In this document: positions 7,350-57,489 of the stretch, piece after piece
How positions within the stretch are numbered: position 1 is the first letter of the stretch
How the letters are laid out: each line of letters begins with the position of its first letter
Notes under the pieces: generated by a model
What the model saw: the letters and a program-made list of their open reading frames with translations, nothing else
What the model was told of the DNA's origin: nothing
Database searches by the model: none
Assembly: GCA_004431415.1 (NCBI GenBank)
Contig: QPMI01000036.1
Location: forward strand, 496,001-560,000
Direction of reading: 5' to 3'
Length of the DNA: 64,000 nucleotides
Source of the DNA: Cyanophora paradoxa CCMP329
Taxonomy: Eukaryota > Plantae > Glaucophyta
Program-made: the position numbers and the translations under genes

Positions 7350-9850
7350 CTACTGCTCCTGAGCCTGAGGACTGTTAGATATAGGCGAGGCCTCCTGCGT
7401 CCGTGCAGCTGGGCCATCCGGGGCCTTCGATGCCTCGACGCCGGCCCCCTTCTGCTTGGCGTGGTGTGCACCCCTGTGCTCCCCCCCCTTCTTCCTCCGA
7501 CGCCGGACCTCATGAAGCACCTGTGGCGCCGGGCCGACGTCAGCAGGCGCACTCGCGGTACGCGGCTCCTGGGAGAGGAAGGAGAGGCGGGTACCTCGGC
7601 GAGGCCGCCGCGAAGCTCGGCCCGCAGCTCCTCCAGCTCCCGCCGCAGCTCCGTCGCCCGCTCCCCGCAGGTGCAGCTGCACGCCGCCGCCAGCGAAGAC
7701 GCCGCCGCCGCCGGCGAAGCTGCTTGCTTCCGATCCCGAGACAAGTCGGAACCCGAGCTCGAGGCTTCGGCGGGGGCACGGTTGAGATGGACCCAGTGCT
7801 CCAGCTCGCGGCGGGCGCGGCCCCAGTTCTCCAGTGCGCGCATCTCAGACGCGCCGTATGCCGCCCCGGGGGCCCTCCGTCGCCGCCAGCGCCACAGCCT
7901 CTGGATCGCCAGCGCCGCCGCCTCGCGGTACCGACGTCTGTGCATACACCGTGTTAGCAGACCGCCGGACCCGGGTAGTTAGTGGGCGCGGGCCGGGCGC
8001 AGGGGTACGCTACCGGAGGTTGCCCTCGGTGAGGAGGGAGACCACGGCCGCCTCGGAGCCCAGCAGCTTTGAGCGCTCCAGAACGAGGCCTGGGGGTACA
8101 TGGTCAGGGTCCAGGGGTACGGGGCACTAGGGACTCCGGGAGCGGGGACGGGTACGGGGCGCGCCGGTGAGGAAGGCGAAAACAAGAAGGCCCCAGAGGA
8201 TGGCGATGGAGAGGACGGCCCGGCCCAGGTAGGATTTCGGAACGATGTCGCCGTACCCAACCGCTGTGAGGGACGATAAGAGGGGCCGGGGAGAGAACGG
8301 GGCGAAGGGTGGCCGGGGTACGTGCTCGTCATCGACACGAAGACGTGCCAGACCGCCGTCTACGGCGCGGCGGGGTGAGTCGATATCTTGGGGCGATGAT
8401 GCAGAGGGGAGGGGTGCTGGGTGCGCGTGCCTGGAAGCTGTATCCTTGGCCGACACCAGCAAAGGGTCGCTCGAATATCAATAGCCAATACGAGAAAACG
8501 GCCAGCGATGAGACGGTCATCGCCGAAATCGTAAGGAAGGGCCGCCTAGCCACTGACGCCCGAAACAGGAACGGCAGGCCCACCTACACGCACGATCACA
8601 ATCGTGGGCTGTACCCCCGCCCCGAGGGGGACGCTGGCGCACGTGGAGGCGCTGAGAGTGGCAGAGGAGGCGGCCGCTGCCCGAGTAGACGTACGAGGCG
8701 TCCCGGGCCTGCGGTAGCGGCGGACATCAGCGCGGTGCGCATGCCACCTGCAGCTGGCATAGTTCCGCCGCACGGATCGGAGGAGGAAGAAGAGGCGGAG
8801 AAAGACGAGGGGGCTCAGGACGCTCTCGTTGTAGGACTCGACCGACTCTCGGAAGACCTGCTTGCTCGCCACCTGCGCAGGGCTTAACACCCAGCTGGGT
8901 ACAGGCTGCTCCAGGGAGGAAGGCGGACCTCGAAGCGGACGGCGGGGGGCAGGTGCGCGATTGCGGCTAGGAGCTCGGGCACGAGCCGCCAGAGGGCGCC
9001 AGAGGCCAGGATGCTCCCTGACACCCGTCATGCCCGAGCGCGTGGGCGGCGGGGAGGGATGCCAGCGGACCGTGGCGGTAGAACTGGCTCTGAGCCTTCA
9101 TGGAGCTGTGGTGGAGGGTCGCGCCGTACCCCAGAAGTACACCTGGCCGGCGAAGCGAGGTGAGGCAGGGCGCGTCGGGTCCGAGGGCGGGGGCGGGCCG
9201 CACAGAGGAGGGCGCTGAGGGCCGTGACGGCCGCGCGCAGGCCGAAGCTGCCGGGCGCGTCCCCGTTCCCGTACCTCGTGTAGGTCTCGATCTAATGCAA
9301 GCCAATCGGTGGAGAGAGGGAAGGAGCTCCACGGGGCAGCCGGTCGAAGGCTCACGTCGATGATCTGGAGCACGACGGCAGCGACGGAGACTGCGCTGAC
9401 GGCGCCGTTGAGGGCCCGCCGTCGTGCGGAAAGAGAAGATCCTGCGGCTCCATCACGTAACGCGGGCGATTGCGCCCGTCTTTCGGTCGCACCGATGCCC
9501 GCCGGGCTCAAGATGGATCTCGATGCTAGCCGCCGGGAGAGGATGCGCGAGCCCGAGTGGAGCCAGGATAATCGCCTGCGCAGAAACGCAGAAGCAGCCT
9601 AGCCGTTACGCGTACGCATGGCGGCGAGGTCTGCCCAGGGTGCCGACCTCGAGCTGCCCGAACTCGGAAGGCCTTTGGACAGCGTCTTTTCAGCCGATCC
9701 GGGAGGCGAGGACGGCACCAGAACGGGCGAGGGAAGGTTAACAAGCTGGAGAGGAACGCAGGAATCAAGATCAAGATCGCTCGGGCCACCGACAGCTGCT
9801 GCCGTGTCACGGCTTGCGTGCCCGGGACGAACGAGGCGGCGCTGATCCAT
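7350..9850 (-). CDS. Potassium channel, small-conductance Ca2+-activated (SK/KCNN)-like
   Basis: Pore LTAVGYGDIVPKSYLGRAVLSIAILWGLLVFAFLT. S1-like ALNGAVSAVSVAAVVLQII, S4-like LVFLRLFFLLR and S5-like YWLLIFERP. Post-S6 REAAALAIQRLWR resembles a calmodulin-binding helix, and there is a C-terminal coiled coil. Confidence 0.8.
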
Positions 9851-13668: not shown

Positions 13669-15482
13669 TCAGGGCGAGGGTTCGGAGGGTTCTGAGGGCT
13701 CGGCTTCTGGGCCATTTTGCATGGTGGGGGGCCGTGGTGGTGGGGCCTCTAGGGCGAGAGCACCAAGTCGGCCAGTCCTGAAGTCGCCGAGGATCTCCTG
13801 CGTACGGCGAACGCGTAAGAATCTGGGACACATGCGATCTCAAGAGCAGACGCTGGTCTTGCCCGGGCAGTTCGTGGGACATCACCAAGGTGCCTCCGTT
13901 CAGCAAGCTGATTCACGTAGTCCTGCAGCCCAAATGAGCGGGCAGCTGGTATTCAATTACGGAGGATCACAGTTTTACCTCGCCATCGATGCACTCTTCT
14001 GGGTCAAGGCCATACCTGGCCTTCAGCACGCCAGGAGGGTTCAATGTGGGTGCTGATCGCTCGAGTTCCCGCACCACATCAATGAAAGCTGCCGCAACCT
14101 GCCCGGCGTTTCAAAGAAGACGGAGAAATAATCGCTACGAAATGGACCTTCTCGTAGTTGTAGCTTGCTTCGCCGATGTCATCGCAAATTGCAAGCTTGA
14201 CTGCATCAGCTTGCCGCTTTGACATATTCATCGGCAGGATCCCTGGTGCATCCAAGAGCTGAAGCGTGTCTCCAAGGGTATTCCACCTGAACTTTAGACG
14301 TGAGCAAGCAAGAAGGCAATTAGAGTCTTGGGCTCACTTGAGGGACTTGGTTACTCCTGCCCGGCGTGCACTATCCACAACTCTTCTCTTCATCAGTCTG
14401 TTGATGAGCGCCGACTTGCCGACGTTCGGAAATCCAATGACACAAGCTCGAACGGGGCGAGGGAGCATCCCACGTTGGGTTCTTCTTTCATTCACCTTCA
14501 ATTGCAATCAGGGCAGCCAGAGGCAAGGGGGGCCGCAAAGGAGAGCCCACCTGCTGGCTGAGCTTCACGGCGGCCTTTACGACAGCTTCTGTTGCCTCCC
14601 CTGAGCGAGCATTGGTCCAGACTGGCGCAATTCCCTCGCGCTTGAAAAAGTCGTTCCATTGCTTCTTGGCGCTTGGAGATACCATATCGAGGCGATTCAG
14701 TATCATAATTCGTGCTCTTCCTTTGCCTCCGCTGACGAAATCCTCGATATCAGGGTGCGATGTTGACATTGGAATCCTTGCATCTCGAATCTGGTGCAGA
14801 CTCAGCTGTGGAAAGTACTGAGGCTGGATGGGGCAAGGCGGCGTGCCTCGAGAAGCAGATCAACGAGGCTGAGTGACGCCTTGATGTCTCGCTCCGCTTT
14901 TGCGATGTGTCCGGGATACCACTGAATGATCTGGCCCTTGCTTGGCTCGGCTGCGAGAGCAGTCGAATCAAGACGGGCGATTGGATCCAAATGATCGCGA
15001 TCCCGCACCCGTATTTCTCTGCTCCTCTTCCTCATCGCGCAAACGCGCCCGCCGCTGCTGGCGCCTTTGAGCCACATTCACCTTGCGCTGGTCGAGCATC
15101 TTGTCGCGCTTCTCCCGGCGCATACGCGCGGATTTCTCCCGATCCACCTGCTCGCCCCCTGACCTTAGCTAAGCGCGTGACCGCGATCGGCGTCCCCCCG
15201 CGCCTTGATCCGGTACTCCATCGTTGTCGCTGGTTGCCTCGCGATGAAGACCCGCGGCGGTGCACATAGCGAGGTCACACTGTCGCCAAAGAAAGAGGAC
15301 CGCTTGGAGAACAGCCTGCAGGGCGCGGGGATCGCCGGAGCCTTCGCACTGGTCTGCAAGATACTTCTGCGTACGTGCCCGGGTTCGGCGGGGGGCGGGT
15401 CGGGAGCGTGGCATGCTCACCCTTCTGTGCGCGGTTGCGCTCTGCACCACGCAGCCAGCGGGAGCGCAAAGCAAGCGGCCAT
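13669..15482 (-). CDS. rbgA: Ribosome biogenesis GTPase RbgA/YlqF, probably plastid-targeted
   Basis: IQWYPGHIAKAER, IRDARIP, LNRLD (G4), VIGFPNVGKSALINRL (G1), AGVT, LLDAPGI (G3), KLAICDDIGEASY and DFRTGRLG. The N-terminus MAACF is transit-peptide-like. Confidence 0.92.
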
Positions 15483-15713: not shown

Positions 15714-16743
15714 ATGGCTGGGGCGGGCGGCGGCAGAGCTTTTCTGAGCGCCCTGGGTGAGCTCGCTCGGCATGCCATGATGCGCGTCGACAGCATTCTG
15801 ACCGCGAACATGCAGCTAACCTACATGGAAACCAAGACGAAGAAAGACAGAGGAAAGAACGGCAGCGGAACGAGCTGACTGCAAATCTGTGCGGTTTTCA
15901 TCAATAGGCCTGCCGTGCCCTCGCCGCCTGAACGCGCGCTGCCCTGCAGGGATGAGCAGATACGCGAGAAGCAACAACGGAAAGCGGCCGAGAAGCATCG
16001 GCTCGAGGCTCTGGCCGCGGCAGAGGCCGCAGAGCAGAAACAGCCTCAAGTGCGTCGCTTCGAGGAGCTGTCTGAGCCACAGGTGTGCTGTTGCAGTGTC
16101 AATCTAGGAAAGCAATCTCAATCGGTTCTCAGAAGGAGGCCGTGCTCGCAAAGCAGAAGAAAGCCGCAGCTCTGCGAGGCCTCCTTGGTTCCGACCCCAG
16201 GGTGGCTCCTCCGCCACATCCCCCAGCACTGGCGCCAGACGGAGCTTTTGCGGCGCCCGCTCGTGCGGACGACGGCGAGGTTGCACAGCTTCTGCGACAG
16301 CTACTTCAGGAGCAACGTGAAATGCGCAGCATGTTGAAGAAAGAAGGCGAGGCTCGCGAAGCATTCCTGGTGTGTTCGAGCTCACTATCTATATCCCCCC
16401 CTGGCTCATCATCGGGCTCATCATCTACGGATACGTACAGGACCGCTTTGAGAATTTCGTCGAGCGGCTATTGATTGGCAGAGTTATGCCCCGCCAACCA
16501 CAGCCACCAAGGGAGCTGCAGTACCCCCGTGAACCAGCCCAAGCAAGGGCAGGAGGGCTGGCTGGGCCCAGAAAACCGAAAGGGCCTACATTCGGGAAGG
16601 AGCGCGAATCTCGGCTGCCAGCACTTCCAAAGATCCGAGAGCAACAGCGAGCTCAGAGGGCAGTTCCAGAGATGCCCCATTCAAACGTTGCACATACAGA
16701 GGGGGAGCTGCCGGGCCGTTCTGCTTTCATTCGAATAGAATAG
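15714..16743 (+). CDS. Coiled-coil hypothetical protein with a CCDC66/CSPP1-like motif
   Basis: Spliced exons with L.DEQIREKQQRKAAEK and LLRQLLQEQREMR. The family resemblance is weak. Confidence 0.5.
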
Positions 16744-16770: not shown

Positions 16771-19707
16771 TTACAATTTCAATGGCTTAATGAAAGCGAC
16801 TACCATGTAAAGTGCAGAGTAATCAAGGTCAGCGTAACCCTTCTCCATCCCCCGCTCCAGCAGCCTCTCCATGGTACCAAGATAGTTGAAGTCCTCCAGT
16901 GCTACCTTCTTGGCCTCTTCCTTGAAAAGCCGCACATCTTTCAGAAGGTGGCGCAGGGGAAAGTTCGGATTCTCAAATCTGTGACGATGTGAGATGCGAA
17001 CACTGAACTAAGGAATCTTAAAAGCTTCAAGTTGGCGCACGATCTTGCTAGCATCTTGTCGAGTTTCTTCTCAAATGTGGGCGCATAGAAAGGAGACTGC
17101 TTGACGATGGAGACAAAGTCCTTTGCATTCACCTCCATGCTCTCTGTGAATCCGAGCGCCTGTGAGAAAGTGAAGGTCTCCGCTGCAATCATGTGGTTGA
17201 GTGCAAGTTTTAGAGCTGCGGCTGTTCCAGGAGGTCCCACATGCATGGGGTTCTTGTCCAGGTCCCCGAACAGAGGCCTCAGTCGCGTGAAAGTGGGCAC
17301 CGAGCTGCCCACCATGACAAGAAGCGTGCCAATCTTTGCTTCAGGAATGCTACCAAGAATGGGTGCTTCCAAGTAATCGACAGCTCCGGCCTTCATGCAG
17401 TCCTTGCCCTGGCATGGAGTCAAGATTCAAACCTTCATGCAGCAGAAAGGTCCAAGGGCTTGCCAGCGCAATAGACTCAGACGGGCCTATCGTTCCCATC
17501 TGGATCACAGTCTTTCCTTTCAAATCCATGCGGGAATCGAAGAGGACCTCGCGAATCGCCTGCCATGCAGTCGGTGAAGGCAGGACCTAGGTGTCTGAAA
17601 ATAAGAAGGTACCTTCGCATCCGACAGGACTGTTATGATTATGCTTGATTGCGCTGTTACTGCAGCTGCATCGCCCAGCACAGGAACGCCAGCCTGCAGG
17701 AAGTGGCACTTAGTATGAAGAATCTAAAAAACTAAACTGTTGCACCTCCTGCAGCTTGCTTGCTCGGGAGACAGTCCGGTTGTAAGCGGTCACCTTCCAT
17801 CCACACTTGTGAAGACGCTCAGCAATCGGTGCACCCATCAGACCGACACCTGCACAGCAAAGGAATCCTTGGAGCGAATCCTGGAAGTCCTGGTGACGAA
17901 ACTGCACGGACCCAGGACGCCAACTGCAGCACTCCGATTACCGCCTTCTGAAGCCTCTCTCACGAGCTCCTTGTACTTCATGAGTGCATACATGCCGGTT
18001 GGTGTGAACTGCTCTGTCTGACTCAATGCCAGGACCTCGTCAATCGTCATCCACCTGCCACTTTCGACCTGAAAAGACACTCAGCCAAATGAGACGAGAA
18101 GCGTTGCATTATTCACCTCTTCTGGCTGCAGTTTAATTTCTCCATCCCATGTGCAGGAGAAGGCAGAACCCCACACTTGGCAGCGATCATTCTTGAACAA
18201 GAAATCGAAAAGGGGGCTGATCGCAAAACACATCGGCACAGGGGCATGACTGAAGGGCAAGAAGCGAACCTTAGTGGAACACCCGAGATGCCCAGCTCTT
18301 CCTCCAGTTCCCGATAAGCTGAGCTGTCAACAGTTTCGCCTTTAGCAACAACACCGCCAGCAGCAACCTCGTAGTAAGAAGGATATATGTCCTGGACACA
18401 TACATGTTCATGCCAGAAAACCAAGCGGCGAAACCTGGCAAAGTTCACCTTCGTGGCTGTGCGCTTGGTGACAAATAGCTTTCCCTCCTTGTTGAAAACA
18501 AAAATGTAAGTTGCCTGATGAAGGAGATTCTGCTGTCGCATCTGCTTCCTCGTCGCAGAACCTATAACCTGAAGGATGAGTCAATTTTGACACGAGTGCA
18601 GCGGGGCAGCCTGGCGAATTGCCTGGTTGTTCTCGTCGACAATGGCAACCTCTTCTTCGGTATTGTTATTGTTATTTGCTGGCTGCTCATGTGCCCCTCG
18701 AGAGATCTTGTCGTATATAGACATGACGTGAGCCTGGCCTGGCAAGCAACATCCATCAGCAGAAGCTGGAAGTCCAAGAACAAACGACTTGCCTGGGCAA
18801 CGCTCATACGCTGCAGCGACGGTCCTTGCGAGAGACATATCGATGCTCATGTACTCGGACTGGTCGAGCAGGCTTCGGATCTCCTGAATCGCAGAGGAGA
18901 CCTTGCATGGGATGCTGAGCTCGGCATCGCTGTGTGCATCCAGCAGCTGGCCGTTTTGCATGATGGCGAGGCATTTCTCGTACGCCGGAGAGTACAGGGC
19001 TGACTGCCTGAGAATAATCATGAACTTCTCTAGAGGCACTCCGTTCAGCTTGCACATTGCCACACTCAGAGCGAAACCCTACGCAACGGTCACATTAGAT
19101 TTGAGATGGATGATAGCGAAGAACTAGATCATACCACAACGTCCGACGCAGCAATGGTAGAGAGAGCCAGGCGAATGCTGGTGGACGTGCCGTTCAGACC
19201 AGTGTTGATCACACTTGCTATGGTCGGCGTTACAAGCGCCCGCAGCCTCTCGAACACGTCGAGGTTCAAGCATCCGACGCATATCGACAGTTTTTCGTCG
19301 TCCTGCTTCGGGGCAAACACCTCGATCTCGGCGTAGCGCCCGCCGTTCAGGACCACCTGCAAGTCGAGCTCCTGCGGCAGCGTGAGCGGGATCGATCGTG
19401 CAGCGCCGCCAAAAGTCTCGCCTGACTCTCTCCGGGCCTCAGGAGCGCTGGGCCAGTGTGCGCGACGACGATCTTGCCCGAGACGGAGCGCGGCGGCGAC
19501 TCGAAGAGCTCCTTGCGCGCGCCGGCGAGCGTGGCGCAGCTTACGAGCACGATCTCCGCATCATCGAAGCTCGTCTGCGCATGCGCGCACGCGCGCGTGG
19601 TCGGTCGAAAGCGCTTCGACGGCCGAAGCAGCGCGCACGGTGGTGGCGCCGCCGAGAGCGGCTACGAGGCGCTTCGGCGGCGTGCCGACGTAGCACAGCT
19701 TCGCCAT
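16771..19707 (-). CDS. Three-domain fusion: degenerate beta-hydroxyacid dehydrogenase + Nudix hydrolase (YfcD-like) + intact beta-hydroxyacid dehydrogenase (3-hydroxyisobutyrate dehydrogenase/glyoxylate reductase family)
   Basis: Nudix box GVVAKGETVDSSAYRELEEELGI. C-terminal domain has GVLGVGLMG, YNRT, YLEAPILGS, ALKLALN and NFPLRHLLKD. The N-terminal domain aligns to the same fold but lacks the motifs. The frame runs without a stop across both domain junctions (ORFs 18581-19063 and 17838-18080). Confidence 0.85.
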
Positions 19708-19858: not shown

Positions 19859-20952
19859 CTAGTACGTCAAGCCGAGGCGGCCGAGCAGGTATTCCCCAGC
19901 CGTGACAGAGGGGTGGGTCTCTGGGGTGCCCTCCGGCCTCGAGATGGTCTCGATGAGGGCGTCGTGATTGGGGTGCACGAAGAAGGCTGCACGCACGTGG
20001 ATAAGAATAAATTTTATATTCGAAATAACATGCAACTCACCAACAGAGTATCGTTCGGGTGTGGGGCTTTGGGGTGCTGCCACGCGATGCAATGTGCTTT
20101 TGAAAAGGCCGCCAGTCCAGCGGCACATAAGATCGCCAGTATTGACAACAAGGGTGCCAGGCAGGCTAGGCACGGAGATCCAGGACCCTGATGCTGTACA
20201 GACCTCCAAACCTGTGGGTGATGTGAGCCTCGGCTCCAGACGGAAGGTGGACCAAAAGCGACCTGGATTGGAGTCTTGGAGGAGCAAAGTCAAGGATCCG
20301 TAGTCAGTGTGCGCTCCGGCTCGATGTTGGCCTGCTTCCAGGTTTCCGTGGGCAGGGTAGTGCAGCAACCGGAGAGTGTGTTCTTGGTGTGTGTGCAGGC
20401 CTGCAAAGTGTTGTTCTGGCCTGCCAAAAGCCAGTGCGAAGCCTTTGAGGATAGCGGCCGAGACTCTTACTCCCTCTTCCCAGTATCTACTGATTGCGCC
20501 CTCGAAACCAGCGACTTCTTTGGGCCACTTGTTCTTCGCTCTGCTCATCCTCTGAAATCGTTCTTCTTCATAAGGATGACAGTCGAAGTTTCCAATGTTG
20601 AAGGCCTGCAGGGCGCATTTAGACTGATCAACCAAACGTTAAATGATCTTACCTCTTTCATATCACGCTTCTTGGCGCTTGGATCCAGCGCCTCCCGCAG
20701 GACGCCAACGTAGCCGCGGTTGCTTTCTGTGCTCTCCCAGGCGTATGCCTCTTTGACCTCCGTCGGGAGCGTGAAAAAATCTGCCGATGACTTGAACAAA
20801 TCTTGCTGGACGTCGTCCGGGATCTGGTGGCCTGAGACCAGGAAAAAGCCGTGCTGAACGCAAGCATTGTAAATCTCGCGCGCGCAGCGGGCTCGCTCGT
20901 CTGCGGAAGATGGCGAGACGAGCGCCGAAACGTCGATGACGGGAAGCGCCAT
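19859..20952 (-). CDS. 2-oxoglutarate/Fe(II)-dependent dioxygenase (isopenicillin N synthase-like family)
   Basis: LPVIDVS, HGFFLVSGH, NRGY, LRLLHYP, AHTDYGSLTLL (HxD), VVNTGDLM, STLHRV and RYS. Confidence 0.93.
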
Positions 20953-21260
20953 CGCGCCGCCACCGAATTACGGAGACGCGGCCGACCTTCAGCGCCCCGC
21001 TTACGCGCTCCGCCCGGCCGCAGCGAGGCACCGGCGAGCGATCCGGCCTCGAGCTAGCAGCTAGCGCGGTAGGGCTGGCGCGTACGCGCTCGCCGGCGGG
21101 CGAACCGATCCGAAGCTAGCAGCTAGCTTAGATCAGGCACGTACGCGCTCAGAGACGGGTCGGGGAGCAGGTAGCTGCACTGCAGCGGGCTGGGCTGGTG
21201 CGCGCTGCAATTGTAAGCGGCTGCGCTCCCTTTTTTTCACCGGCGGGTACAGTCGCAGCA

Positions 21261-22897
21261 ATGTCGGCCTTCGCAACGCCCTTCCCCGTCGCTTCGTATG
21301 CGGTGCCGGCGGTGACGCGGGCCGCAATTCGCTCGGCCCCGTCGACCCCGGCTCGCCGCCTCCGCAGCGAGGCTTCCGGCACCCGCGTCCACGCCGCCGG
21401 CCGTCGGCAGTTCTTCGGCGCGACGCAGGCGCTTCGTCGTCCCTCGTCCAGCGGACTGCGGCTCGCTGGCGTGCCGGTGCGATCGGGCGTCTTTAGGTGC
21501 CCGGCGGCTGTTGAGATTGCGGCGTCCGCGCAGAAGCTGACAGTGGAGGCGAACGCGAGCGTTCCGGCCGCGCTCTCATCGCTGGGTTTCACGAACGACG
21601 AGCGCGTGCAGGTTGGTCGCATCGAAGGGGCAGTGGTGTCCCTTTCGCCGCCGCGGTGACCCCGCGCGTCAGGTTCTCAGCGAGGCGCTCCCATATATCC
21701 TGAAGTTCACGGGCAAGACGATGGTCATCAAGTACGGCGGCGCGGCCATGGTGCAGAGCGACCTCAAGGACTTCGTCATCCGCGACCTCGTCTTCCTGTC
21801 GCTCGTCGGCATAAGGCCCATCTTCGTGCACGGAGGCGGCCCCGAGATCAATCAGTGGCTCAGCAAGGTGCGGGGGCCGGCCGATCGCCCCCGCCCCAAG
21901 CGCCAGCCGCCAACGCGGCGCAGGTGGGCATCGAGAAGCAGTTCCGGAACGGCCTGCGCGTGACCGACGGCCCGACGATGGACGTCGTCGAGATGGTTCT
22001 CACCGGACGCGTGAACAAGGAGGCGAGCGCCATCCGCTTCCCCCAGCTCGAACCGCCTGACGCCTTTCCGCTAGCTCGTGGCGCTGATCAACAAGGCGGG
22101 CGGCCGCGCGGTCGGCATCTGCGGCAAGGACGGCGGCCTGTTCCAGGCCATCCAGCGGGACCCCGAGTACGGCTTTGTCGGTGACGTCGGCAAGGTGCGG
22201 GGGCGGGGGCGTGCAGGGGCCGGGGGGGTCCCGGCGCTGGCTGCTGACGGCCCCGGGGCGCGCGGGCAGGTGGACACCAAGCTGCTGGACACGTTGACGC
22301 AGGCGGGGTACATCCCCGTGGTGGCATCGGTCGCGGCGGACGAGTCGGGCCAGCCGTACAACATCAACGCGGACACGGTGGCCGGGGAGATCGCGGGGGC
22401 GCTCAAGGCCGAGAAGCTCATCCTCCTCACCGACGTCCCTGGCATCCTCAAGGCGCGCCGGGCCCCGGCCCCGCCCCCGCCCCCGCCACCGCCCCCGCTT
22501 CCGCGCCGACCGCCCGCGCAGGACGCCAAGGACCCGGGTACCCTCATCTCCGTGATGAACACGAAGGAGGCGCACGGGTACATCGATTCGGGCGTCATCT
22601 CCGGCGGCATGATCCCGAAGGCGAGCCGCCCCCCGCGCCGCGGCCCCCGTGCCGTCCTCTCAACGCCGCCGCCGGCGCTCAGGTGACCTGCTGTATGGAC
22701 ACCCTCAAGAAGGGCGTCAACGCGACGCACATCATCGACGGCCGCAAGCCCCACTCCCTCCTCCTCGAAGTAAGCTACTGTACCCCCCGGAAAAGCCTCC
22801 CCCTGAGTTGGCACCGCCCCAGATCTTCACTGACGGGGGTATCGGCACCGTCCTGCTCCCCGAGGATGACAGCGACTTCGGCTCGGGCGCCATCTAA
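21261..22897 (+). CDS. argB: N-acetylglutamate kinase, plastid-targeted
   Basis: Transit peptide MSAFATPF... Eight exons give [55 protein letters not shown] and IFTDGGIGT. Confidence 0.97.
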
Positions 22898-45371: not shown

Positions 45372-46510
45372 AGGCTCCAAAAAAGGACTAAAATGAAAAC
45401 CGGCCTGTTCGAGCCACCCTCCAAAGAAGGGACCCCCAGCGGCCGAAAAGCTTCATAAAAATTATTATGCATGCATGCTGTGGGCAAAGTATGCTCGTCA
45501 GCTCCTGCCGGGCGAGACAAGCCCGGAGGGCGGCCTTCACACGTGGAAATCTGACTTGCACTGCATGCGTGCAGGCTGTGGGCATGCGGGAAACCGGCCT
45601 GTTCGAGCCACCCTCAAAAGAAGGGACCCCCAGCGGCCGAGAACATGCATGCATGCTGTGGGCAAAGTATGCTCGTCAGCTCCTGCCGCGCAAGGCCAGC
45701 CGGGAAGGCGGCCTCACGTGCGGAAATCTGACTTGCACTGCATGCGTGCAGGCTGTGGGCATGCGGGAAACCGGCCTGTTCGAGTCACCCTCAAAAGAAG
45801 GGACCCCCAGCGGCCGAGAACATGCATGCATGCTGTGGGCAAAGTATGCTCGTCAGCTCCTGCCGCGCAAGGCCAGCCGAGAAGGCGGCCTCACGTGCGG
45901 AAATCTGACTTGCACTGCATGCGTGCAGGCTGTGGGCATGCGGGAAACCGGCCTGTTCGAGCCACCCTCCAAAGAAGGGACCCCCAGCGGCCGAAAAGCT
46001 TCAATTAAAATTATGATAGGCTCCAAGGCTCCAAAAAAAGACTGAAATGAAAATCGGCCTGTTCGAGCCACCCTCCAAAGAAGGGACCCCCAGCGGCCGA
46101 AAAGCTTCAATTAAAATTATGATAGGCTCCAAGGCTCCAAAAAAAGACTGAAATGAAAATCGGCCTGTTCGAGCCACCCTCCAAAGAAGGGACCCCCAGC
46201 GGCCGAAAAGCTTCAATTAAAATTATGATAGGCTCCAAGGCTCCAAAAAAAGACTGAAATGAAAATCGGCCTGTTCGAGCCACCCTCCAAAGAAGGGACC
46301 CCCAGCGGCCGAAAAGCTTCAATTAAAATTATGATAGGCTCCAAGGCTCCAAAAAAAGACTGAAATGAAAATCGGCCTGTTCGAGCCACCCTCCAAAGAA
46401 GGGACCCCCAGCGGCCGAAAAGCTTCAATGATGGGCGCCCCAAAGAAAGTTGAAAATGAAAACCGGCCTGTTCGAGCCACACTTCGAAAAGGGGGCGCCC
46501 AGCGGCCGAA
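45372..46510. repeat. Composite tandem array: nine copies of a ~55-bp core in 177-bp and 106-bp units
   Basis: Core AAAYCGGCCTGTTCGAGCCACCCTCCAAAGAAGGGACCCCCAGCGGCCGA starts at 45397, 45591, 45768, 45945, 46051, 46157, 46263, 46369 and 46460 (degenerate). Confidence 0.95.
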
Positions 46511-47968: not shown

Positions 47969-48270
47969 GTTGCAGGGTGTCTGGAGCAGGTGGTAGCTGT
48001 AAGATCGCTTTCGTAACTCGGTAAAGAGTGAGGCTCGTGCGGGCTGCAGCTGCTGTGCTGGGGCGCTCCAAGCTCGAAGGAGCCGCGGGCTATTTCTGGC
48101 GCATACGTCATGTCGATTTCGCTTAGCGCTCGCGCGCGAGCGCAAACGAGAGCCGATCGTTACGAGTGAAGGGGCCTCCGCATGCTAGCCTTTTTTTTTG
48201 CGGTTGGTGCGTACCCCCCAACTTCCTCTTCCCCACTAAAAAAAGACACTCTTCCCCCCCACTCGGCCCC

Positions 48271-50513
48271 AAGCCGCACACGCTCGAGCTCAGCCCTGTT
48301 TCGAGCCGTCGGAAGAGCGCCGCTGGAATCGGTCTAGACAAGGCTGCGAGTTCCCCGCAGCGCCTGGCTCGGGATCAGGCAGCCCAGGGAACTTGCCTTC
48401 CACGTTCCAAACATGGCGCTCACGGGGGACATGCAAGGCGGCCTCGAGAAGCAGCTCGTCGAAGCGCTCGCCCGCGCCGAGTCCGCGAACCCGGCCGCGC
48501 TGGTGCGACGTCGGCAGGCGAACGCGCACCCTGCGCGGCCGGATCGCGCGTGCTTCTAATCGGTCGCGGTTGCGCTACGCTCGCGCAGGTGGATGCTTCG
48601 GGGAGCCGCCTGTCGCCGGCGGCGCTGGCTCGCGCGCTGAAGATCCCCGCCCTCGTCGAGCTCGCCGTCTTCGTTGCGGACGGGCGGGTGCGCGCTAAGG
48701 CGGGAAGAGCTCACGCTGGCCACGCCTAAGGGCTGGCCACGCTGGTGCGCTGCGGTTGCGCGAGCTAAGGCCGCCTCCGCCGCCGACTCCTGGCCCAGGC
48801 GTGGGACGTGGCCGAGCCTTTCGAGCCGGTGTGGTACATGAGGAAGAGCCCGCACGACGCGGCGTACGCGATGGAATACGAGGACGAGGAGGAGATGCAG
48901 TCGGACGCTTTCTTCCGCGAAGTGAACGCGCTGCTAAACGGAGGTGCGCCCCGGCCGCGGCGGGCCCCGGAATTCGAATTCGTGCGCGGCGCCCGCCGAC
49001 CGCCCACGGCCGCAGGCGCCCTCGGAGCCGTGGCGGACGTGGTGGAGAAGGAGGAGGCGCCGGCGGAGGTCCGGAGCATGGCGGGCGCGTGCCTCGCCCG
49101 CATCGCGGCCTCGCGCGCGCCCGGACTGCTCTCCCGCCTCCTCGCCGGCCGCCAGCTCTTCGCGCCCCTGCTCCGCCTGCTGGACCACCTCTTCCGCGAC
49201 CGGCCGGGGCGGCCCGCCGGCGCCGGCAAGATGGGGGTACGCCGCGCCGCCCTCCTGGTCGCGCCGCGCGCTCGAGCCTCGGGCTTCGTGCGCAGCGGCA
49301 CCTCGCTGAGCTCATGGAGGCCGTGGTGCTCTACGGGGAGGACGGGCAGGCGCTTTCCGATCCAATTCGATCAATTTGCAATTCGATCTGATTGTGACGG
49401 CCGCCCGCCGCCGCATGCAGGCCGAGCGAGCGACCGCCGAGCCCGCAGCGCTGGCCCCTTCGTCTCCGCCCTCCGCTGCTTCTGCACGGACCCAGTGTGA
49501 GCGCGTAACTTTATGTACCCGTGCGTTGGTTGACGCTGACCCGCCGGCCCAGCGCCGACGTCGTGTACCCCGGCCCTTCCCTCCCGAACACGAGCGGCGT
49601 GCGCGCGTCGCGAATCCTGTAACCCCCTCCTTTTCGATGCCTGTACCCAGTGCGGTTGGCGGCGAGCCTGGCGAAGCTCTCGGAGCTCTTCCTGTGGGCG
49701 ACTCCAACGGGTGGGGGGTACGCGCCCTCCCGCCCCGTACCCCTGACGGGAACCGACCCGTACCCCAGGGGAGCTGCCGACCGAGGAAGGCGTAGCCAGG
49801 CAGGCGAGGGCCCTCGAGGCGTCCGGCGCCCTGCAGGCCATGGGCGGTGCGCGTGCCCCTCTCCGACGGCTTTGTACCCCCTGAAGCGAAGCTGTACCCC
49901 CAGAGGTCGTGGTGGAGATCGCCAAATCGATCCCGCGTATCGCGGAGCGCGTGAGCTACCCCCCGCCCTGCCCTTCTCCGCCCCGCCTCGCCCCCCTCCC
50001 TCCGCCGACCCGAGGGGGTACAGGACATTCACTACGCTTCTCGGGCCCTCTCCGACCTGCTGAAGACCCTGGAGAAGGCTCTCGTCCGCTGCGGGAGCCC
50101 CGCCGCCGTGCGCGCGCGCTGCTGGAACTAGCGAAGACCCTTTCGTCCACTCTCTGAACATGAGCGGCCGCTCGCGTGCAGGCGCGGCGCGCCGCGGACT
50201 AGTGCGCGTCGGCCCTCGCCGCCGCCGAGCGGCACGACCGGCACAACGCGCGCCTCGCCCTCTCAAACCTCCGCCGCTCGCGATCGCTCGCGCCGCCCTC
50301 TGACTCGGGCCGGGCCCACGCAGGCCTTCGGCGGGCTGCGCAACTACAAGAAGACGTTCGACGGCATGGTCGAGGAGCTCCGGCCCTGGCCCGCGGCGCC
50401 GGCCGCCACTCCGTCCCAGCCGCCCGCAGCGAACGGCCTGGCACCAAGGGCCCCCACGGCCGCCCAGGGCGCTGGTGGCTGCCGGTCCGGCCTTGTCCGT
50501 GGATTCTTCAACA
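48271..50513 (+). repeat. Copy 1 of a ~2.3-kb direct segmental duplication
   Basis: Matches 54408-56678 from AAGCCGCACACGCTCGAG to TTCTTCAACA. Confidence 0.95.
48413..50513 (+). pseudogene. Degraded paralogue of the 54550-56683 gene
   Basis: Relative to copy 2 it has deletions near 48497 and 50440, a diverged block at 48697-48790, and GAC-CAC changed to GAC-TAG (stop at 50200-50202). Confidence 0.6.
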
Positions 50514-51523: not shown

Positions 51524-54217
51524 CTAAAGCTCAAGAGTGGTCTTTACATCCTCCAGAAAAGGCATCCAATCCTGCTTTCTATCACACAGCTTTTGGAATC
51601 CCTGCTCAAAATGGACTCTATACAACTCCATACTCACATTATCGGTCTTTGGTTGCAAAAGAAAGAGATAATATTTGCTGATACGCTCAGAAATACTTCT
51701 TTCAGAAATGATTTTCTGCTGCAACGCTGTGTTCTTTCGAAGGACAGCAGCCTGAAAAAGGATTTGCGCGAAATAGCTCATTTGTTTCTGACTGGAAGAT
51801 GTTGTTTTCATCTCTATAAGACAAATACAGCCCTCATCATCAATTGCTAAGAAATCAGGCGTGCATGCATAGTTCTCTGCTCATGCCAACATCAAGTCAA
51901 GTCAAAGAAATGACAAGAAAAACACACTTGTTTCGGGCTCTTGCTCATGTTTGAATCGGAATTCAGCCCAAAGCCTTGAGTGTTCAGAGAACCAGGCACG
52001 GTGCAGTGATGTCTTGCCAGGCTGACAAAAAAATACATAGAGACCAGCTTCAAGGAGAAAGTTTACACAACGTAGCCCGACTGCAAGCTGCCACAATTCC
52101 AGATGAATTCTTGCATGAATCGATGCCTCCATTCTTTTTGAAAAGACATTCATCGAGCACCCCCAAACTATTCCACCGACCTTCTGCACCACAGTACGAA
52201 GCAGCTGCAAGGGCCAGGCCAGTCTCACAGAAAATCCCTTGAACTTGGCTTCCTGTGTATTTTTTCTCTCCAAAGCAAAATCGTTCAGCACTCTCCAGTT
52301 GAGTAAAATGCTTGTAAACAGCTTCAAACACCTTTGTAAAATGAGCAGCTGTAGTTGGGATTGCTGTTTCATTTTGAGATGCATCCCAATGCTGAATCAG
52401 CTCAAAAGCTTCAGCAATGTCCAGATTCTTCTCAACTTCGCCTATAAATCGATTTTTCCCAGTTGGAGTGATCATTGTCTTGCAGTCGTTGGACATGTTT
52501 TCGTCTGAATCCGAAAACTCCTTCAAGAAAACCTATAAAGGATCAGAGCATTCGCTTCATCCCTGAAAACAAATTCACAGTACCTTCAACTCAGAGCATA
52601 AGTGCCTTAAAGTCTCTCTGGGGAAATTATCACCTTGCAGCTTCTGGTCCAGACTCTGAGAAAAAATCATAAGAATCTTCATTGTGTAGATGATTATGAT
52701 TGTGCACCTGTAACTCATGGCCCAACCTGTCAGCCAAAGATACACATGAGCCCAACACGGTATGAAATAAGTCGTTTGAAGGGTGCATATTTGATACGAA
52801 CCAGGAAGTCACAGCTTGAATAAAGTCAAGAACATTGAACTTAATTTCGTCAATCTGGAATTCCTCACCAATCGAATTTCGGAATGCAGAAATGAGAAGC
52901 CTGCAAACGTTGAATTTCGGAATGCAGAGATAAAAATCATGACTGGTAAACGATAGGATCATGATTGGTACACTGCACCTGCATTTTTCAAAGTATGTGC
53001 AGTTTCCTGCTTCAATTTATCTGCATGCACCAAGCCGTCTGCATGTATAATGAATGCTTCCGATTGATTATTGCAACTGATCTGGTGCACCTTTTATCAG
53101 TAGTCTCTCGACATAGCAGGTTCTTTCCCAGCAGACTGACATCATAAGCCGGGTTAAACTCATAGGTCGATTGCAGCTGCTCTGCAATTGAGAAAACTCA
53201 CCTCACAAACAGTTCGCAAATCCACTGCTGGAGCTTTTTTCGACTTTCTGTTGTGAACGACTCTACAAACATGTTCTGCATGCATCTGTTCACAACGTCA
53301 AGTAAAATTGTCAATGACAACATGTGCATACAGCTGCAGACGTGTAATGGTCCTACCCTTCAATTGTGGAAGTGCTTGTGCAACCAGAGATGATGTAATC
53401 GATTGTTGAAAAACCTGAGATATTTTTCTCACAAGATATTTTCATACTGGGGTCTCTTACATATAGGGAGCGAACCATTGTTATCACAAGCGTCAAAACA
53501 ATTCAAGAAATGATCCCTTCCATGATTTGATGTGATATCGGTCTGGCACATCTTGATGGCACTTTCCACTGCCTCTCTTATGGCCAACCTGTTGCCAATC
53601 TTTGATAAGCGACTGCGAGAGCATTTGAAAATTTGGGGGGAAAGTCTGAAAGCATACTTTTTGATACGTAAAGCAAGCTCTTTGTTTGCTTCACACATGT
53701 GCATGAGGAGATTTTTACCATCCTTGTCTTGATACTGGATGACAATTCTCCCGCATTCGGAGCAGAAACCCCCAAAAATGCAACCGATGGTCTTCAAGAT
53801 CGAATCACTGCGTGTGAATGATCATTGCATGTACTGAATGATCGGATTGGATCAGTGAGAATGATGTACACACCTTTTCGCAATCGCTGCTTCGACGAGA
53901 TCCATATATTTGACAACCACACAAATTGGAGTGCTGGCGCCATCTTCAGTTTTAGCGCTCTTTATGAAAGTCTTAATGTCAACCCATGGCCCGTCGCCGA
54001 ATGACTGCTTTAACATTTCCCATAGTCCGTCCACCCATCTGCGTGTGCACAGAATGCATTAGCTTATGCTTATGCGCCCCGCAAGGCGACGGCGGCGGAC
54101 TTGCCCTTGCTCCTGCGCTGACAAAGTTGAACCGGGCTCCAATGCCGGCGCCTGGATCATTTCATCGCGCAGCTGGTTCCAGAATGCGATGACAGGTGCG
54201 CCTGCACGCGCAGACAT
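51524..54217 (-). CDS. AT-rich multi-exon hypothetical protein with ankyrin-like fragments
   Basis: MSARAGAPVIAFWNQL... spliced to WVDGLWEMLKQ..., QYQDKDGKNLLMHMC and DACDNNGSLPI. Collinear minus-strand ORFs continue down to 51524, and the 3' end is uncertain. Confidence 0.5.
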
Positions 54218-54407
54218 GCTGCCGCAGTGCAGCTGGCTGCCAGAGTGCTCCTCCGATCCGCACCCAAACCAACCCCCCCCTCCCCCCCCCCCCCCCCCCC
54301 CCCCCCCCGCCCGCCCACCTAGGCCTCAGGGTCCCGACTCCCCGCGGCCGAGTCCGCGCGTGACACGTAAAATCCGTAAAGCGCCGGCGGTAAATCGTCC
54401 GGCTTTG

Positions 54408-56678
54408 AAGCCGCACACGCTCGAGCTCAGCCCTGTTTCGAGCCGTCGGAAGAGCGCCGCTGGAATCGGTCTAGACAAGGCTGCGAGTTCCCCGCAGCGC
54501 CTGGCTCGGGATCAGGCAGCCCAGGGAACTTGCCTTCCACGTTCCAAACATGGCGTTCACGGGGGACATGCAAGGCGGCCTCGAGAAGCAGCTCGTCGAA
54601 GCGCTCGCCCGCGCCGAGTCCGCGAACCCGGCCTCGCTGGTGCGAGTCCGTGCGACGTCCACAGGCGAACGCGCACCCTGCGCGGCCGGATCGCGCGTGC
54701 GTCTAATCGGTCGCGGTTGCGCTACGCTCGCGCAGGTGGATGCTTCGGGGAGCCGCCTGTCGCCGGCGGCGCTGGCTCGCGCGCTGAAGATCCCCGCCCT
54801 CGTGGAGCTCGCGGTCTTCGTTGCGGACGGGCGGGTGCGTGCTTTGGCCGCGCGAGCTAATGCAGGTCCCGCCGCTGACGTCGACCGCGCGTCCTGGGCC
54901 CAGGTGTGGGATGTGGCCGAGCCTTTCGAGCCGGTGTGGTACATGAGGAAGAGCCCGCACGACGCGGCGTACGCGATGGAATACGAGGACGACGAGGAGA
55001 TGCAGTCGGACGCTTTCTTCCGCGAAGTGAACGCGCTGCTAAACGGAGGTGCGCCCCGGCCGCGGCGGGCCCCGGAATTCGAATTCGTGCGCGGCGCCCG
55101 CCGACCGCCCACGGCCGCAGGCGCCCTCGGGGCCGTGGCGGACGTGGTGGAGAAGGAGGAGGCGCCGGAGGAGGTCCGGAGCACGGCGGGGGCGTGCCTC
55201 GCCCGCATCGCGGCCTCGCGCGCGCCCGGACTGCTCTCCCGCCTCCTCGCCGGCCGCCAGCTCTTCGCGCCCCTGCTCCGCCTGCTGGACCACCTCTTCC
55301 GCGACCGGCCGGGGCGGCCCGCCGGCGCCGGCAAGATGGGGGTACGCCGCGCCGCCCTCCTGGTCGCGCCGCGCGCTCGAGCCTCGGGCTTCGTGCGCAG
55401 CGGCACCTCGCTGAGCTCATGGAGGCCGTGGTGCTCTACGGGGAGGACGGGCAGGCGCTTTCCGATCCAATTCGATCAATTTGCAATTCGATCTGATTGT
55501 GACGGCCGCCCGCCGCCGCATGCAGGCCGAGCGAGCGACCGCCGAGCCCGCAGCGCTGGCCCCCTTCGTCTCCGCCCTCCGCTGCTTCTGCACGGACCCA
55601 GTGTGAGCGCGTAACTTTATGTACCCGTGCGTTGGTTGACGCTGACCCGCCGGCCCCAGCGCCGACGTCGTGTACCCCGGCCCCTTCCCTCCCGAACACG
55701 AGCGGCGTGCGCGCGTCGCGAATCCTGTAACCCCCTCCTTTTCCGATGCCTGTACCCCAGTGCGGTTGGCGGCGAGCCTGGCGAAGCTCTCGGAGCTCTT
55801 CCTGTGGGGCGACTCCAACCGGGTGGGGGGTACGCGCCCTCCCGCCCCGTACCCCTGACGGGAACCGACCCCGTACCCCCAGGGGAGCTGCCGACCGAGG
55901 AAGGCGTAGCCAGGCAGGCGAGGGCCCTCGAGGCGTCCGGCGCCCTGCAGGCCATGGGCGGTGCGCGTGCCCCTCTCCGACGGCTTTGTACCCCCTGAAG
56001 CGAAGCTGTACCCCCAGAGGTCGTGGTGGAGATTGCCAAATCGATCCCACGTATCGCGGAGCGCGTGAGCTACTCCCCGCCCTGCCCTTCTCCGCCCCGC
56101 TCCGCCCCCCTCCCTCCGCTCACCCGAGGGGGTACAGGACATTCACTACGCTTCTCGGGCCCTCTTCGACCTGCTGAAGACCCTGGAGAAGGCTCTCGTC
56201 CGCTGCGGGAGCCCCGCCGCCGTGCGCGCGCGCTGCTGAAACTAGCGAAGACCCTTTCGTCCATTCTCTGAACATGAGCGGTCGCTCGCGTGCAGGCGCG
56301 GCGCGCCGCGGACCACTGCGCAGCGGCCCTCGCCGCCGCCCAGCGGCACGACCGGCACAACGCGCGCCGCGCCCTCTCAAACCTCCGCCGCTCGCGATCG
56401 CTCGCGCCGCCCTCTGACTCGGGCCGGGCCCACGCAGGCCTTCGGCGGGCTGCGCAACTACAAGATGACGTTCGACGGCATGGTCGCGGAGCTCCGGCCC
56501 CGGCCCGCGGCCCCCGCCGCCGCTCCGTCCCAGCCGCCCGCAGCGAACGGCCCGGCAAGGCCCAGGCCTCCGCCGGCGGAGGGGCAGGCTCCGGCGCCGG
56601 TGCCGGCGCCGAGGGCCCCCATGGCCGCCCAGGGCGCCGGCGGCCGCGGCTCCGGCCTCGTCCGCGGCTTCTTCAACA
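54408..56678 (+). repeat. Copy 2 of the ~2.3-kb direct segmental duplication
   Basis: Near-identical to 48271-50513. Confidence 0.95.
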
Positions 56679-56683
56679 GGTAG
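54550..56683 (+). CDS. Hypothetical alpha-helical (ARM-like) multi-exon protein
   Basis: MAFTGDMQGGLEKQL..., VRSTAGACLARIAAS, LFAPLLRLLDHLF, ...GLVRGFFNR*. Homopolymer indels at 55560-55880 break the frame. Confidence 0.55.
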
Positions 56684-57489
56684 CGAGCGAAGCTTCTCAA
56701 TTTCTCCTCTGCCTTGCAGTCGCCATCTGCATCCGTCTTTCCTGCCTTTTCCAAATTTCTGAATTGCAATGCCGCAGTGCGGCATGATGATGATATGTCT
56801 GCCAGTTCGATTCTCAGAGAGTGATCGCATTGTTCTGCGGCAAAAACTTGAAATTTGATGATTCATGCCGTGCCGGTGATGTGGTCCTGAACATGCCGCA
56901 GAGCCGCAGTGCAAGCTAGCATGCGCACTGCGGCAGTCTCCGCGAGGCCGCGTTCTAGGGCCCCCCCCCGCGGCGGGGGCAGCAAACCGTTGTATGCTCC
57001 AGGCTTAGCTATAGTACAGTCCTAGCATGCGCAGCCGCCGCCGCTCACTCTCTAGAGACCGCCGGACCCGATCGCGAGCTCAGCTGCAGCGCTCAGCAGC
57101 TAGCGGCTGCGCTGCGGACGCACGCTGGGGACTGTGACACGGTACCGGTGGCCCAGTGGCCCCGGCCCGGCGGCCCGGCGGGGCCTCTGCGGGCACTCGG
57201 GGCGGGGGCGGGCACTTAAGCTTGAGTGCCGTCTTAAGCTTAGAAGTGCTTGCAATTGCACTTGCCGCCAAGTACTAATAATCAACATGACTGCTTAATT
57301 ACATGATTACAGCTACAAGCTTTGAAGCTCAGTGAGAATCAGCCACGACATGCTCTCGAAAAAGTAGAATTGAAGGCCCGCATGGGGCAGGGGCCTTGCC
57401 GGCCCCGCCCCCTGGGCAAAGACGAAAAAATTGAAAAAGAAGTAGAAGAGAGGCTACCAGGCCTAGGTCGAGAGGGCCTGGGCCTAGGT

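Follow-up and report, generated by a model that had tools for sequence, protein, structure and literature searches.

The stretch analyzed here, referred to as the window, comprises 64,000 nucleotides of the glaucophyte Cyanophora paradoxa CCMP329 (GenBank assembly GCA_004431415.1, contig QPMI01000036.1, positions 496,001 to 560,000 of the forward strand), and the gene under study, the fusion gene, occupies window positions 19707–16771 on the minus strand, with 14 exons and 13 introns, a reading frame of 2217 nt and a product of 738 amino acids. The fusion protein it encodes consists of a degraded N-terminal copy of a β-hydroxyacid dehydrogenase (β-HAD), here called the dead copy, followed by a Nudix domain of the YfcD type and an intact, presumably live, C-terminal β-HAD copy. 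We read this protein, with a probability of roughly 55%, as a single-chain β-HAD pseudo-dimer that has one working site and carries an inserted YfcD Nudix domain. The features of the gene are as follows.

19707-19639, 19574-19422, 19371-19135, 19078-18793, 18738-18623, minus strand: exons 1 to 5 of the fusion gene
18568-18449, 18391-18270, 18216-18117, 18068-17912, 17849-17746, minus strand: exons 6 to 10
17693-17613, 17559-17464, 17408-17041, 16978-16771, minus strand: exons 11 to 14
18689..19707, minus strand: dead β-HAD copy, residues 1–265 (from profile, alignment and structure model)
19171..19173, minus strand: codon of Arg141, at the position of the catalytic Lys (from alignment)
18968..19075, minus strand: helical segment kept in the dead copy, residues 155–190, a putative dimer interface that would complete the live site (from conservation and the predicted local distance difference test, pLDDT)
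17964..18655, minus strand: YfcD-type Nudix domain (isopentenyl-diphosphate isomerase-like), residues ~277–436 (from profile match)
18287..18355, minus strand: canonical Nudix box, residues 340–362 (from motif)
16771..17927, minus strand: intact β-HAD copy, residues 449–738 (from Pfam, alignment and structure search)
17208..17210, minus strand: codon of the catalytic Lys614 (from alignment)
16774..16782, minus strand: C-terminal tripeptide LKL, a possible, weak, non-canonical peroxisomal signal

Both ends of the reading frame, the ATG at 19707 and the stop at 16771, are exact, and the fusion protein corresponds to gene model tig00000144_g9167.t1 of Cyanophora paradoxa in EukProt (record P0001), which forms a singleton cluster. 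The exons were searched singly and all 14 match record P0001 exactly, each at the expected position, while whole-protein and domain analyses made use of the stored 738-amino-acid record. The introns measure 48–64 nt, 4 of the 13 being of the GC-AG type, with intron 1 placed at 19638–19575 from spliced contigs. All 13 appear as joints among the contigs of three RNA-type runs, one from each of three studies, and none in the genomic run X15; the type of the RNA-type runs was itself only guessed, and it is the absence of spliced joints from the DNA run that identifies them as cDNA. Contigs are not single molecules, and since the contig of run X1 merges the fusion gene with both its neighbors into a string of three genes, contigs alone prove no transcript. 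Run X8 contains one 2296-nt contig with the fusion gene by itself. Exon 5 (residues 250–287) runs from the dead copy into the Nudix domain, and exon 9 (residues 402–453) from the Nudix domain into the live copy, whose first strand it encodes, so that separate transcripts would need ends within exons. Separate genes, or an artifact of annotation, are ruled out by these domain borders together with the single-gene contig of run X8, and the fusion gene is one open, spliced and expressed reading frame. Because an in-frame stop lies two codons upstream of the ATG and the chain opens directly with its first strand, the fusion protein has no transit peptide. Third-position GC is 0.91 in exon 1 and drops along the gene, exon 5 and all later exons having ~0.6 or less.

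The C-terminal copy (residues 449–738) matches Pfam NAD_binding_2 with 99 bits and NAD_binding_11 with 53 bits, both above cut-off. Its GxGxxG motif at 454–459 (G454, G456, G459) is interrupted by intron 9, and it keeps NRT at 477–479, T538, the catalytic K614 with N618, and F676, K683 and D684. Over its full length it shares 45–52% identity with stand-alone proteins from cyanobacteria, Nitrospira and other sources, the best 120 of these relatives all being single-domain proteins of 280–313 amino acids and the eukaryote set contributing none. By sequence, the solved proteins nearest to it are the Geobacter succinic semialdehyde (SSA) reductase 3PDU and Arabidopsis GLYR1 3DOJ (E 1e-31 and 9e-29 for the pair). 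Of these, 3PDU comes first in both structure searches, with Z 33.7 (rmsd 1.6 over 283 residues) for 3PDU and Z 33.3 for 3DOJ. The active site of the GLYR enzymes is made up of six residues, T95, S121, K170, N174, F231 and D239 in GLYR1 numbering. Counted along the 3DOJ alignment, the equivalents of T95, K170, N174, F231 and D239 are retained, so that the C copy shares with GLYR1 and 3PDU five of the six active-site residues by which GLYR/SSA reductase orthologues are recognized, together with the NRT motif; K170, N174 and D239 are catalytic or flanking residues of GLYR1 (PMC7756219). With the sixth residue replaced, the C copy may act like GLYR but is not classed as an orthologue. It differs from both in being only 28–29% identical to them, and in that these known enzymes are stand-alone subunits of ~290 amino acids without a dead copy or a Nudix domain. 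The members of the cyanobacterial/Nitrospira β-HAD subfamily are stand-alone as well, and the C copy does not fall firmly inside the cyanobacterial cluster. Candidate NCBIfam equivalogs that were tried and rejected for this copy are tartronate semialdehyde reductase (129.5 bits versus a cut-off of 340.75), HIBADH (98 versus 291.6), L-threonate dehydrogenase (78.8 versus 350) and sulfolactaldehyde reductase (71.8 versus 348). As judged from its sequence, the C copy is an intact member of an uncharacterized cyanobacterial/Nitrospira β-HAD subfamily that by structure lies nearest the glyoxylate/SSA reductases. It is probably an NADPH-binding reductase of a small acid-aldehyde, with glyoxylate, SSA or tartronate semialdehyde as the most likely substrates and Lys614 and Asn618 as the residues employed, located in the cytosol or possibly in the peroxisome.

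An earlier note on this DNA had described the N-terminal domain as collinear with the C-terminal dehydrogenase, and this is borne out. A profile built from the 120 stand-alone C-copy relatives matches residues 22–196 with 80.3 bits (E 8.7e-27), the best of 2000 shuffles reaching 5.3, although Pfam returns no match on this copy; the peptides quoted in the note are all present in the sequence. Arg141 indeed aligns with Lys614 of the C copy, replacing the catalytic Lys as had been observed, and the catalytic Asn has become Ser145. The GxGxxG cofactor loop is missing, again as described, and the damage exceeds that description, with ~28 residues of the second strand-helix-strand unit deleted in addition. 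Alignment to the relatives shows that the glycine loop, NRT, MGT, the substrate loop, PNF and KD have all gone, and among the columns conserved at ≥90% in the 120 relatives (n = 81) the N copy keeps 25 compared to 70 in the C copy. By language-model features (ESM Atlas) the N copy nevertheless sits among β-HAD clusters, and its structure model, with a pLDDT of 84.5, matches β-HAD crystal chains end to end (Z ~21, ~250 residues aligned), a fold match that is not independent of the profile result, the model having been built on the family alignment. The N copy thus combines the full two-domain β-HAD fold, and homology to the family, with the loss of the cofactor loop and of the Lys/Asn pair by which an enzyme would be recognized, and on this sequence evidence neither enzyme activity nor NAD(P) binding of the ordinary kind is plausible for it. 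One conceivable use for such a copy is regulatory, with a metabolite or NAD(P) as the sensed ligand and allosteric control exerted on the live site or on the Nudix domain, as proposed for other pseudo-dehydrogenases. The Rossmann core is structurally kept in the N-domain model and a carboxylate could still be bound by Arg141, which sits where the catalytic Lys would be, yet with the glycine-rich loop, NRT, MGT, the substrate loop and PNF/KD all lost on top of the ~28-residue deletion, we regard a sensor as very unlikely.

Residues 277–436 form the YfcD-type Nudix domain, with 180.8 bits to NF011922 (cut-off 152) and ~47% identity to the E. coli YfcD structure 2FKB (E 1e-37). The intact Nudix box that the earlier note had located between the two dehydrogenase copies is present at residues 340–362 and canonical; the canonical box is common to this domain and YfcD, whereas YfcD is stand-alone and the Nudix domain here is inserted between two dehydrogenase folds. 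The idea that the domain clears NAD(P)H or ADP-ribose finds no support: the NudC profile gives 21.6 bits (cut-off 158) and the NudE profile 16.8 bits (cut-off 169), it is the YfcD cut-off that is passed instead, and no linkage of YfcD to β-HAD genes appears, a scan of neighborhoods at ~78 YfcD-like loci (those labeled human-gut metagenome being left out) finding no β-HAD gene near any of them. NudC proteins carry the signature SQPWPFP, and ADP-ribose pyrophosphatases a conserved Pro 15–16 residues after the Nudix box; neither follows the Nudix box of the fusion protein. Type I isopentenyl-diphosphate isomerase was likewise rejected, with 65.7 and 58.5 bits versus NCBIfam cut-offs of 127 and 105.8. 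The literature search retrieved no paper that gives a substrate for YfcD and none that ties a Nudix domain to a β-HAD. With high confidence we predict the domain to be an active metal-dependent pyrophosphatase, working as a largely independent house-cleaning domain. A eukaryotic metagenome contig (L048:2200-3400) carries an intron-containing, apparently stand-alone YfcD-type Nudix gene, ~54% identical in the best segment and with no β-HAD in the locus, which places YfcD in other eukaryotes as well, there without the dehydrogenases. Elsewhere (L002) a tandem double YfcD-like Nudix adjoins ftsY and metK.

β-HADs are dimers or tetramers joined via their helical domains, and in the pseudo-dimer that we propose the dead copy would be the built-in partner subunit of the live copy, its residues 155–190 completing the live active site. 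The helical halves of the dead and the live copy are likely to pack together, either within the chain or swapped between two chains, with the dead copy stabilizing the live one and supplying the wall segment of its site. Conservation in the N copy centers on the helices that follow the catalytic one: at profile positions 182–208 it retains 8 of the 9 conserved columns and the C copy 4 of 9, while 118 of the 120 ordinary relatives lose at most two (≤2) conserved columns there; the losses of the C copy cluster with p ~0.006 when the segment is fixed by the N copy (post hoc). Over the wider helical segment identity is 49% between N and the family, 43% between C and the family and 30% between N and C. 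A segment kept in the dead copy and drifted in the live copy is what would be expected if a subunit lends this segment to its partner's site, and the live copy's own version may have drifted because the live copy no longer completes the site of another subunit.

The same pattern bears on the possibility that the fusion is incidental, with a tandem duplicate and a neighboring Nudix gene having been read into one frame in a gene-dense genome, the live copy homodimerizing alone and the dead copy being tolerated as a passenger, or serving simply for solubility or as a scaffold. The occurrence of the layout in one species only would agree with this, as would the N branch, which is saturated, its origin not being resolvable in trees. 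The N copy, however, keeps a complete and confidently foldable fold with no frameshifts or stops across four introns. What it conserves is gathered in a single segment, and it is there that the C copy shows the mirror-image losses, a pattern not expected of neutral decay; we therefore consider an incidental origin quite improbable.

Returning to the pseudo-dimer, the full-length AlphaFold model has essentially no alignment depth at residues 1–440 and yet assigns pLDDT values of 63–89 to residues 141–200, the rest of the N copy lying at ~30–50 and the Nudix domain mostly at 30–70. The predicted template modeling score (pTM) is 0.61 versus the 0.44–0.49 expected, as a rough estimate, with only the C copy placed. 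The simplest reading is that AlphaFold placed the 141–200 helices in the partner slot implied by the coevolution signal of the C copy, which would speak for compatibility and not for necessity. Structure aligners are sequential, and searches with the full model are thus blind to pseudo-dimer geometry. The earlier note had offered the dead copy as an intramolecular partner or a sensor; the first half of this proposal is supported indirectly, by the mirrored conservation and the pLDDT values, and the second half finds no such support, with the cofactor loop and the substrate-site motifs lost.

Several points weigh against our interpretation. The helical segment was picked after seeing the data, and scan-corrected single-copy tests are not significant (p 0.056 for C, p 0.13 for N). 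That this segment lines the active site of the partner is background on β-HAD structures in general, and the docking of N on C is inferred from model confidence values only. The searches yielded no orthologue on which purifying selection on the dead copy could be shown. As to the live copy, the position of GLYR1 Ser121 is occupied by Leu565, with Leu also found in all 120 relatives, and identity to any characterized enzyme is ~29% at most, far under all NCBIfam equivalog cut-offs, its substrate thus being only predicted.

Replacement of a partner within the chain is known from the same superfamily. In class II ketol-acid reductoisomerase (KARI) an in-chain duplicate of the helical domain replaces the partner subunit. 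Helical domains are the primary dimer interface, and long-chain 6-phosphogluconate dehydrogenase (6PGDH) arose by in-chain duplication of the helical half (bioRxiv 10.64898/2026.01.21.700892). The likeness of the fusion protein to these enzymes consists in the proposed pseudo-dimer; the difference is that 6PGDH and KARI duplicate the helical half only, behind the live domain, whereas here a whole subunit with a crippled Rossmann domain stands in front, with a foreign enzyme in between. The N model also matches NPAC/GLYR1 (2UYY) and the Trypanosoma mitoribosome assembly pair 6SGA chains FM and FN. These we take to be β-HAD folds used as non-catalytic oligomer modules, but each is a chain of its own, engaged in chromatin or ribosome assembly, and not fused to an active copy. 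The nearest dead-plus-live precedent may be the plant At1g18270-type protein of ~1370 amino acids, which we take to comprise two tandem β-HAD units (the first with an imperfect cofactor loop), a DUF1537 kinase and a class II aldolase; it belongs to another β-HAD subfamily, has no Nudix domain, and its length lies beyond the range searched.

Exon 4, when compared with 1.8 billion representatives, retrieved only the fusion protein itself and one spurious match, the stand-alone family not being retrieved either. A full-length word search, capped at 8000 candidates and covering lengths of 406–1291 amino acids, returned only KsgA–Nudix fusions and none with the three-part layout. Searches with the dead copy in metagenomes, and of the ESM Atlas, produced no second protein of this layout, and no paper describing a dehydrogenase–Nudix–dehydrogenase arrangement was found in the literature search. 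Within the sensitivity of these searches the novelty suspected in the earlier note stands, no characterized or common protein of the exact layout having been found, and the layout is apparently lineage-specific; the parts and the design principle, an in-chain pseudo-dimer, are known, and the combination is new. The KsgA/RsmA rRNA methylase–Nudix fusions are recurrent, ~450-amino-acid proteins (L020, L023, L033, L034, L037, L038 and L045; P0009 and P0010), and the ESM Atlas also holds a metallo-β-lactamase–β-HAD fusion cluster of 576 amino acids from Verrucomicrobiota. Concerning origin, the C copy is a long branch that lies outside the starred cyanobacterial cluster in a quick tree and nearest the cyanobacterial rows in a smaller, careful one, the N and C copies as sisters are neither shown nor rejected (approximately unbiased test, p 0.49), and the two copies have no intron position in common. 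With the origin of the C copy and the sisterhood of N and C left unsettled by the trees, and without shared introns, we do not claim an endosymbiotic origin.

The same pseudo-dimer could also be part of a coupled damage-control protein, the fusion having been kept because both activities serve one task. In such a scheme the reductase might remove a reactive aldehyde, for example glyoxylate, and the Nudix domain destroy nucleotides or cofactors damaged by it, possibly in peroxisomes during photorespiration. Both sites are intact on one chain, and a bacterial ketopantoate reductase–Nudix cluster in the ESM Atlas (443 amino acids, 123 members, mostly Deferribacterota), the only parallel and a lead only, shows that fusion to Nudix domains does occur among reductases of the superfamily. 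Glyoxylate modifies proteins and DNA (PMC2762691), and the C-terminal LKL is an experimentally verified non-canonical plant peroxisomal targeting signal of type 1 (PMC8886021). Few proteins with non-canonical tripeptides are peroxisomal, however (PMC3427985), and the tail of the fusion protein is no longer than those of its bacterial relatives. Gene neighborhoods speak against coupling from both sides, no Nudix gene being found near 9 relatives of the C copy, just as no β-HAD gene is found near the YfcD-like loci, and neither set of neighborhoods holds a clue to substrate; where related Nudix domains are found in fusions, the partner is an unrelated protein such as KsgA, and the NudC and NudE scores given above point the same way. 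Across gene neighborhoods, fusions and the literature, no evidence for coupling of the two activities was found, and a direct hand-over between the reductase and Nudix sites is required by no evidence. We consider coupled damage control unlikely, and its most specific form, in which an obligate dead-live pair removes the reactive aldehyde and the tethered YfcD Nudix domain breaks down the adducts that this aldehyde forms with nucleotides or cofactors, perhaps in peroxisomes, more doubtful still; a role in metabolite repair is a guess.

Directly upstream of the fusion gene, at window positions 19859–20952 on the minus strand, lies a 2-oxoglutarate/Fe(II) dioxygenase gene (DIOX_N and 2OG-FeII_Oxy) with its stop ~150 nt above the fusion-gene ATG; runs X2 and X8 contain a separate contig for it, and in X1 it is merged with the fusion gene. 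On the other side a convergent, expressed gene without Pfam match (16085–16743, plus strand) has its stop 28 nt from that of the fusion gene, so that the 3′ ends of the two genes probably overlap. Further features of the window are an amino-acid kinase family gene (21198–22897, plus strand), acetylglutamate kinase-like and likely plastid-targeted, with an Ala/Ser-rich N-terminal extension; pieces at 14488–15077 (minus strand) that by eye resemble a circularly permuted GTPase of the YlqF/RbgA type and have no Pfam match; two near-identical multi-kilobase copies at ~48100–50500 and 54100–56900, as judged from matching translations of open reading frames; and a tandem repeat with a unit of ~150 nt at ~45470–46050.

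The presence on one chain of YfcD and a common cyanobacterial β-HAD, two enzymes of unassigned substrate, is a lead, weak while the arrangement is known from one species. If the damage-control scheme were true, the fusion would be a Rosetta stone, providing a first function for YfcD and for the cyanobacterial/Nitrospira β-HAD subfamily, both widespread and uncharacterized. As a pseudo-dimer, the protein would be a natural example of a symmetric dimeric enzyme dividing its jobs after duplication, with one copy in charge of catalysis, the other apparently providing only the surface that completes its partner, and decay of the two mirrored accordingly. It would resemble a step that has been proposed in the emergence of long-chain 6PGDH, with the dead subunit in this case retained in its entirety.

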